Origin: Octopus bimaculoides
Lineage: Eukaryota
DNA length: 63,306 nucleotides
Reading direction: 5' to 3'
Assembly (NCBI RefSeq): GCF_001194135.2
Contig: NC_068997.1
Coordinates: 50,530,620-50,593,925, forward strand
Each line of letters begins with the position of its first letter. Positions within the stretch are counted from its first letter, which is position 1. Shown here in pieces: positions 56,456 to 57,769 of the stretch. A program made the position numbers and the translations under genes. The notes below the pieces were generated by a model. The model searched no databases. It was not told where the DNA came from and worked only from the letters and a program-made list of their open reading frames with translations.

Positions 56456-56715
56456 GTCATTGTTTCTGTTCTTTTCTGCAGTTGCCAAACTTCATTATTT
56501 TTGCAGTCACGTCTATTTAAATTTTTTTTCTTTACATAGAAATTATTGTATTATTTGTTATAAACAAAATTTAAACGATAGGTTTTAATCCTGGTGAAAC
56601 GCGAGTTCAGTTTCCATCTGCTCTCAGCTTTGATTTTCTGTCTTGCATCATTCGTCTTTAGATTTATACTGACTATCAATATATACATGTCCTATCACGA
56701 TTCTTCAAGCATATC

Positions 56716-56973
56716 TGTTGTTGTTGTTGTTGTTGTTGGCACTCCGTCGCTTACGACGACGAGGGTTCCAGTTGATCCGATCAACGGAACAACCTTCTCA
56801 AGAAATTAACGTGCAAGTGGCTGAGCACTCTCCAAAGACACGTGTACTCTTAACGTAGTTCTCGGGGAGATTCAGTGTGACATGGCTGACCCTTTGAAAT
56901 ACAGGTACAACAGAAACAGGAAGAAAGAGTGAGAGAAAGTTGTGGTGAAAGAGTACAGCAGGATTCGCCACCA
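56716..56973 (-). mobile_element. Family C-type SINE body and (CAA)n tail, fused to a 5S rRNA-derived head
   Basis: Same body as 35860-36105 and same tail as 26950-27140 and 57770-57887. Confidence 0.88.
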
Positions 56974-56976
56974 TTT

Positions 56977-57081
56977 TTTACAGCACCTAGGTTTCCCAAG
57001 CGGTCACCAACTAGGCTCGACTTTGCTCAACTTCGGTGATCGGACGAGAACCGGTGTTTTCAAAGTGAGATGGCCGTAAAC
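56977..57081 (-). pseudogene. 5S rRNA-derived sequence with a 12-nt internal deletion (head of a composite retroposon)
   Basis: Minus strand reads GTTTACGGCCATCTCACTTTGAAAACACCGGTTCTCGTCCGATCACCGAAGTTGAGCAAAGTCGAGCCTAGTT^GGTGACCGCTTGGGAAACCTAGGTGCTGTA. It is collinear with mollusc-type 5S rRNA and lacks the AGTACTTGGATG segment. Confidence 0.92.
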
Positions 57082-57769
57082 TTAAACATATCGATATGTT
57101 CGAGATATATAGATCCCCAAAAGATACCACATGAATATTTCTTAAATGATCAGAAGGTAAGCATATAGTTTCTCATCATTCGTGTCCAATGGACATTCAA
57201 CTCTCCTGGAACTAAATTTAAAGAATTTCATTAAGAAAGATTTTTTTTTACAAAGACTTATGTAATAACTATGTGGAACGTACTTTGGAATTCATTCCTT
57301 CCAATTATTGGTAACTTGTAAAGTAATTCACAAACTGGGTTCAGAATCGTTATCTTTCGTTAATTTCCGCCTAACTCCGTCAGTTTGTCGACATTTTTTT
57401 GTGTTATACAAAAAGGCTGTTGGCTTTACACATGGGTAAGTTAATTTGTTTATGTACGAGAAGTAGCACCAAATTTCCCTAAAATAATTTCATTGAAGAA
57501 AGTTCACAGAGGTTTATAGAAAAAATCTATGGCTGTACTGTCAAACGAACGTTGGAATTGAACCCTGAAATTATTGATGAACTGTAAACAATTCACAAAC
57601 TGGGTACAGAATCAGGACCTTTTGTGTTTGGCTTACACTTATCAATTTCTTTAGATTTGTTCCAATCTATTTCAAATTTAGTATATTGACGTAGTTTTTG
57701 GAAGCTAATTGTTGAAAAGAAATCCATTGGTACCCAAACGCAACAAGTGGGAAGTACATGGGCCTCTGT

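Follow-up and report, generated by a model that had tools for sequence, protein, structure and literature searches.

The closest described counterparts of the element reported here are HaSE3 of Helicoverpa and CoeSINE5 of the coelacanth. HaSE3 carries a 5S head on the 3′ part of HaSE1, and its origin was proposed to lie in a template switch from SINE RNA to 5S rRNA (PMC3272025). CoeSINE5 and CoeSINE4 form a pair of 5S-headed and tRNA-headed elements for which the same origin was proposed (PMC5786205). The 5S-headed SINE design and its template-switch origin are also treated in PMC4824008. Composite heads of 5S plus partial tRNA are ascribed to the Deu-SINE group (AmnSINE1, zebrafish SINE3, and OS-SINE1) by Nishihara et al. 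2006 (cited in both PMC4824008 and PMC4758252), and a template switch was proposed for these heads too. The same two papers cite Buzdin et al. 2003 for mammalian chimeras in which U6, 5S, or U3 was joined to L1 or Alu by template switching, each of them single-copy according to these citations. For cephalopods, the giant squid genome was reported to contain ~24,000 5S-derived loci, termed "likely SINEs" (PMC6962438).

We analyzed a stretch of 63,306 nucleotides from Octopus bimaculoides, referred to here as the window. It contains a composite unit of 366 nt on the minus strand, in which a 5S head, an A-run, a linker, a SINE body, and a (CAA)n tail follow one another between two copies of a short direct repeat.

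57082-57092, minus strand: 5′ copy of the target-site duplication, GATATGTTTAA, identical to the 3′ copy at 9/11 positions
56975-57081, minus strand: 5S rRNA-derived head, starting at 5S +1 and covering model positions 1-120 (Rfam RF00001, three-way fold)
56974-56979, minus strand: A-run AAAAAA at the 3′ end of the 5S part, overlapping the last 5S positions
56960-56973, minus strand: 14-nt linker TGGTGGCGAATCCT, occurring once in the window
56910-56959, minus strand: 5′ part of the SINE body, beginning with GCTGTACTCTTTCACC and found in the window otherwise only in the copy at 35867
56739-56909, minus strand: 3′ module of the SINE, common to four window copies (alignment, tail fold)
56716-56738, minus strand: (CAA)n microsatellite tail of 7.7 units (TRF)
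56705-56715, minus strand: 3′ copy of the target-site duplication, GATATGCTTGA, pairing with GATATGTTTAA

This layout had been outlined in an initial annotation, which placed a near-complete 5S rRNA on the minus strand with its start at the exact +1 (57081), followed by an A-run, a SINE body, and a (CAA)n tail, 366 bp altogether. The start and extent of the 5S part were confirmed by the RF00001 match, the order of the remaining parts by the sequence and TRF, and the length was found to be correct. The 5S/SINE junction (27 nt) reads GGTGCTGTAAAAAATGGTGGCGAATCC. The SINE body comprises ~220 nt, from 56959 down to 56739 (−), and body and tail have the same orientation as the 5S head.

Like HaSE3 and CoeSINE5, the octopus unit has a 5S head from +1. 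A body comes next, and then what looks like a LINE-type 3′ module, which the same genome also carries behind a tRNA-like head. Whereas HaSE3 and CoeSINE5 are families, the octopus unit is known from one locus, its promoter boxes are damaged, and its tail is (CAA)n. The host in the present case is a cephalopod, and literature searches did not find a described cephalopod 5S-headed SINE or SINE3. With the Deu-SINE group the unit shares the fusion of 5S upstream of a possible remnant of an older head, the linker (GGTGGCGAATCC) being weakly box B-like. In contrast to that group, no Deu domain was seen, a tRNA remnant was not supported by Rfam, and the linker measures only 14 nt. The chimeras of Buzdin et al., as far as they are portrayed in the citing papers, resemble the octopus unit in having a full-length small RNA at the 5′ end, a retroelement in the same orientation at the 3′ end, and one duplication around both. 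In that portrayal they are formed with L1 and poly(A), whereas the octopus tail is (CAA)7.7 and hairpins of the kind known from stringent LINE/SINE pairs are predicted in the 3′ module. The giant squid loci likewise represent dispersed 5S-derived sequence in a coleoid cephalopod; PMC6962438 gives no element structure, the comparison is made by description, and squid and octopus repeat families differ widely. Under both leading readings discussed below, the unit belongs to an already known kind of element. Judged by its architecture it appears to work like a SINE3, but we do not file it as a proven member because the promoter of this copy is damaged and the unit is known from one locus.

The Infernal alignment to RF00001 that had been suggested for the 5S part was performed and yielded a full-span match at 56975-57081 (−), covering model positions 1-120 without truncation (70.9 bits, gathering score 38, E 5.9e-13). 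Eighteen model positions are occupied by 6 nt, which leaves ~12 nt missing and agrees with the loss of 12 nt from the 5′ part of box C described in the initial annotation. The deletion is located at 57009/57008, between an intermediate element-like CCTAGT (57010-57015) and the remainder of box C. In the box A-like segment at 57018-57032, the conserved UAAGC reads UGAGC. The box positions are those that we take over from Xenopus and human 5S genes, and the letters of the missing 12 nt are presumed from general metazoan 5S, not from a cephalopod reference. On this assignment, the promoter of this copy, which is of type 1 for Pol III and consists of box A, the intermediate element, and box C, is broken. 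With the 5′ part of box C lost, a base changed in the UAAGC of box A, and a further 12 nt deleted from the body, the copy at 56705-57092 is dead and cannot act as a source gene. A master copy elsewhere could have an intact promoter. TTTT is absent from the whole 366 nt, as it is from 8-12% of comparable sequences. This absence is a weak hint that Pol III transcription from 5S +1 could proceed as far as the tail.

Pairing in the 5S part is largely preserved, as had been claimed before. In the RF00001 alignment and with RNAfold, helices I, II, and III and the base of helix V are paired, with the terminal G1·A as the sole mismatch. RNAfold recovered the canonical 5S three-way junction with a z-score of only −1.3, so the fold alone proves nothing. 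The 3′ end of the 5S part reads ...GCUGUAAAAAA, where ...GUAAAC and then a run of U's would be expected. Neither the native terminal C nor the U-tract is left, A's stand in their place, and the first ~3 A's of the A-run pair with the TTT of helix I. The 5S RNA that served as template may have been shortened and oligoadenylated, or the 5S end may have mutated. BLAST and a permissive Rfam scan detected no other 5S-like locus in the 63-kb window. A TATA-like TATATA is present at 57106-57111 (−), at −30 to −25 from 5S +1, a position at which upstream elements occur in some Pol III genes, with a chance of 3.9% in the window; insertion into AT-rich DNA probably accounts for it.

The question of whether the unit was inserted in one piece or in two was addressed through the flanking repeat. 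On the minus strand, GATATGTTTAA and GATATGCTTGA are identical at 9/11 positions and at 8/9 positions in the core, and both differences are transitions, which corroborates the repeat as it had been reported. When 20,000 pairs of sites with this spacing, taken from the window, were scored with the same boundary freedom, 1.5% did as well by chance. The duplication abuts 5S +1 on one side and the end of the tail on the other, bracketing the whole element. With boundary-flexible scoring, no duplication was found to flank the 5S part alone, and the best value for the SINE alone was 8/11, displaced by 4 nt. The one-piece insertion considered probable in the initial annotation is favored because the best flanking repeat, the sole credible duplication, encloses the whole unit and none comparable exists for the parts. 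The pattern thus favors integration of all 366 nt as a single cDNA, and we consider one-piece retroposition, over all readings that include it, to be likely. A perfect 16-nt palindrome, AACATATCGATATGTT, is found at 57085-57100 and overlaps the 5′ copy of the duplication.

Related copies of the SINE part were found elsewhere in the window.

35867-36125, plus strand: copy of this SINE body that is headless, 85.5% identity, (CA)n tail (BLAST, alignment)
57775-57886, minus strand: third copy of the 3′ module, 88.6% identity, ~680 bp upstream on the same strand (BLAST, alignment)
26790-27140, plus strand: SINE copy whose front is tRNA-like, with a CORE-like segment, having only the 3′ module in common, 72-76% identity
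22972-23167, minus strand: partial relative with a tRNA-like front and a CORE-like segment, sharing the first ~50 nt of the module only

The 3′ module (~56909 to 56739, ~170 nt) is all that the window copies have in common in the alignment. It recurs in three other window copies, one of them behind a tRNA-like front; the BLAST match of the unit to this tRNA-fronted copy spans 26929-27142 (+), and that to the headless copy spans 35867-36107 (+). The term CORE-like was assigned from the motif CCTTGAGCAAGACACTT, which we take to mark such a segment, and Rfam called no tRNA in the tRNA-like front of the tRNA-fronted copies. The headless copy starts 14 nt downstream of the point equivalent to the 5S/SINE junction, right after an unrelated repeat. 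The assembly gap 57889-58514 has removed the 5′ part of the copy at 57775-57886 and would hide any head. No other head is seen joined to this body in the window, one copy being headless and one cut by the gap. Two hairpins are predicted in the 3′ part of the module, at 56765-56790 and 56744-56761, with no covariation across the four sequences. The tail is (CAA)n here versus (CA)n at the ends of the sister copies. Because the module recurs behind different fronts and ends in hairpins plus a variable microsatellite, it looks like a LINE-recognized tail module used by several SINE families. No LINE carrying this 3′ tail was found within the window.

The initial annotation had further suggested that a tRNA head was swapped for 5S. 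The copies did not bear this out. Within the window, only the 3′ ~170 nt of the body are common with the tRNA-like-headed copy, and the 5′ ~50-65 nt occur only here and in the single copy that has no head. No tRNA remnant was picked up in the SINE part by a permissive Rfam search. The linker TGGTGGCGAATCCT, unique within the window, weakly resembles a tRNA T-arm or box B. A tRNA remnant in the 5′ body was considered and rejected, the alignment to the tRNA/CORE fronts of the other copies resting only on a shared 3′ edge.

A second 12-nt deletion was found in the body at 56876/56875 (−), where the three other copies covering this stretch (35867, 26929, and 22972-23167) all have CTCTGTGTCATG. This private deletion and the one in the 5S part are equal in length. 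By comparison with it, the 5S deletion may well be private to this copy too. The 5S deletion as a family-wide trait was judged unlikely, since it removes part of the promoter and the copy has the second private 12-nt deletion. A six-frame search with the SINE body returned Octopus bimaculoides gene models with SINE-derived exons, with up to 86% identity, which points to this species or a close relative as the host.

The surroundings of the unit were surveyed as well. Two features recur in the description.

56150-56225, plus strand: tRNA-Asn(GTT) gene, convergent with the 5S-SINE unit and 480 bp away
6882-7337, 10882-11097, 40718-40942, 42530-42952, 43887-44188, 49938-50339, 52512-52856, and 54915-55376: examples of another SINE-like repeat, RWASFSFHLPNPLTRLWS

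An intact tRNA gene at ~500 bp, convergent with the unit, had been noted before and proved to be the tRNA-Asn(GTT) gene. A functional link between it and the 5S-SINE unit was rejected, nothing beyond proximity being found. A 68-bp tandem repeat extends over 56188-56389 (+) with 3.0 copies and a 95% match. Its repeat unit consists of the 3′ half of the tRNA-Asn gene, from the anticodon arm to the acceptor end, and a ~31-nt trailer with a T5 terminator. Only the first repeat unit is joined to the complete tRNA, and a fourth, degenerate piece lies at ~56408-56440. The additional SINE-like repeat has at least eight copies in the window, with a translation containing ...RWASFSFHLPNPLTRLWS...LPKVP.SGTEP..., and is far commoner there than the family studied here. 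Another abundant and unrelated repeat (...TTTCCATGCTAGCATGGGTTGGAC...GGATGCCCTTCC...) with a (CAT)n-like end was seen at 35690-35866 (+), 29836-30016, 35387-35526, 38879-39000, and 11326-11642; the first of these adjoins the headless SINE copy at 35867. A mariner-like transposase remnant with in-frame stops occupies 47152-47769 (+) (Pfam HTH_48, E 1.2e-07). The database proteins closest to its ORF are at most 63% identical and are encoded on 1-2-kb contigs. Dozens of weak Rfam matches to mir-297, mir-3149, and mir-466 were discarded as artefacts, as they scored below the gathering score and lay on (CA)n/(TA)n-type microsatellites. No host exons were found within the window, which consists of repeats.

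As the best explanation, we tentatively propose that the unit is a decayed retrocopy with SINE3 architecture, composed of a 5S head, a SINE body, a LINE-recognized 3′ module, and a microsatellite tail, and that it is one copy of a multicopy octopus 5S-headed SINE. By target-primed reverse transcription, the reverse transcriptase of a partner LINE would prime on the (CAA)n/hairpin tail where an AT-rich target had been nicked, and would then copy the SINE body. Once it had reached the 5′ end of the body RNA, or come close to it, the enzyme would switch to 5S rRNA and continue to +1. The switch may belong to this very insertion; more likely, it took place once in an ancestral element, and the 5S-headed RNA made from that ancestor was recopied. 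Integration of the whole cDNA at once would give rise to the 11-bp target-site duplication.

Membership in a family is suggested by the full-span 5S match from +1, by the body and tail in the same orientation, and by the recurrence of the 3′ ~170 nt in the window, once behind a tRNA-like front. The duplication around the whole unit, the lack of another head on this body in the window, the like design of published families, and the 5S-derived loci of the giant squid point the same way, and so, weakly, does the absence of TTTT. The octopus genome has a size of ~2.7 Gb, and a feature met in one 63-kb window is far likelier to exist in thousands of copies than in just a few. On these grounds of inference we lean toward a family rather than a unique founding event. 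Several points speak against a family, among them the lack of a second junction copy in the window and of a cephalopod 5S-headed SINE in the literature searches. The near-complete helix pairing suggests a copy newly taken from a genuine 5S rRNA and not a SINE head with a long evolution behind it; the start of the other body copy, 14 nt from the junction, fits a 5′ end of the body RNA at that place and a simple end-to-end jump; and the type-1 promoter of this copy is broken.

Copies of the junction were also searched for directly. No second copy with the 5S/SINE junction was found in the 63-kb window. In metagenome and viral contigs, the 17-mer CTGTACTCTTTCACCAC gave 73 and 6 loci, respectively, all of which were chance matches (17-23-mers, ≤23 bp). 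The four frames open across the junction gave 0 matches in a word-indexed protein search, in collections that contain almost nothing of this repeat. When the 58-aa junction ORF was run exhaustively with HMMER, in collections near-empty for this repeat, only unrelated tandem-repeat proteins were returned. Literature searches found neither a cephalopod 5S reference sequence nor papers with the sequence strings of the unit.

The strongest competitor is a one-off chimera, formed when a reverse transcriptase jumped from SINE RNA, or LINE 3′-end RNA, to cellular 5S rRNA, and inserted once without ever being amplified. Its anatomy and the duplication around the whole unit would be the same, so these fit equally. 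A 5S part that spans everything between +1 and the 3′ strand of helix I and keeps its helices intact is what small-RNA/LINE chimeras display. From the start of the headless copy 14 nt from the junction point, the jump may have taken place where the body RNA naturally begins, and a second junction copy was seen neither in the window nor in the protein collections. However, these negative searches are nearly uninformative, as the window was the only host DNA that they covered. A single-copy event is, by inference, very improbable in a given 63-kb window, and with a (CAA)n tail in place of poly(A) the classic L1 pathway is not directly applicable. We therefore regard a single, never amplified chimera as possible but doubtful, and rank it behind the multicopy 5S-headed SINE.

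Two successive insertions would require an older 5S retropseudogene with a short A-tail, whose own duplication is the observed repeat, and a later, 5′-truncated SINE inserted between the A-tail and the 3′ copy of that duplication. Such a history appears unlikely. The 5S part does end in an A-run, LINE-driven elements often nest in A-rich tails, and a weak repeat that flanks only the SINE (TGCTGTAAAAA versus TGCTTGAAGAA, 8/11, 4 nt beyond the tail) can be aligned. That repeat scores well below the one around the whole unit, however, and leaves the SINE without a convincing duplication of its own. The sequence of events also demands one exact insertion position. In addition, the 5S pseudogene would need a poly(A)-dependent LINE, yet the SINEs here end in (CAA)n or (CA)n.

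Very unlikely is an orphon, that is, a 5S gene copied at the DNA level together with its native upstream region, whose terminator region was replaced or hit by a SINE and whose flanking repeat arose by chance. TATATA at −30 to −25 (chance 3.9%) corresponds to the site of an upstream element in some invertebrate 5S genes, but it is a post hoc observation in AT-rich DNA, which is preferred by LINE endonucleases. The native 3′ end and the T-run terminator are missing, the repeat around the whole unit would have to be a coincidence (1.5%), and the permissive Rfam scan showed no second 5S unit or spacer repeat nearby. An assembly artefact joining reads from a 5S array to a SINE may be dismissed as extremely improbable, since even in this draft assembly with many gaps, the nearest at 57889-58514, the junction has neither Ns nor a shared repeat, and matching flanks on both sides are hard to obtain by misassembly.

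Returning to the multicopy 5S-headed SINE, it is quite possible, though with somewhat greater reserve, that octopus has an undescribed family of this type, which would be the first SINE3-type family characterized in a cephalopod or mollusc. Its 5S head would have been put on a tail module of tRNA/CORE-type octopus SINEs, and the family may relate to the ~24,000 5S-derived loci of the giant squid.

Under either leading reading, this is an inactive copy that does not evidently affect its surroundings. Template jumping is the assumed origin of new SINE families and is also a known route by which mobile elements obtain a new promoter. If the unit is a one-off chimera, a non-L1 LINE with a microsatellite tail and hairpins would be able to make small-RNA chimeras by template jumping in vivo. 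If it belongs to a family, it would represent an independent origin of 5S-headed SINEs in a phylum without any characterized so far and a clean case of promoter (head) replacement on a shared LINE-recognition tail. Such a family could also be a key to the very high counts of 5S-derived loci in cephalopod genomes.
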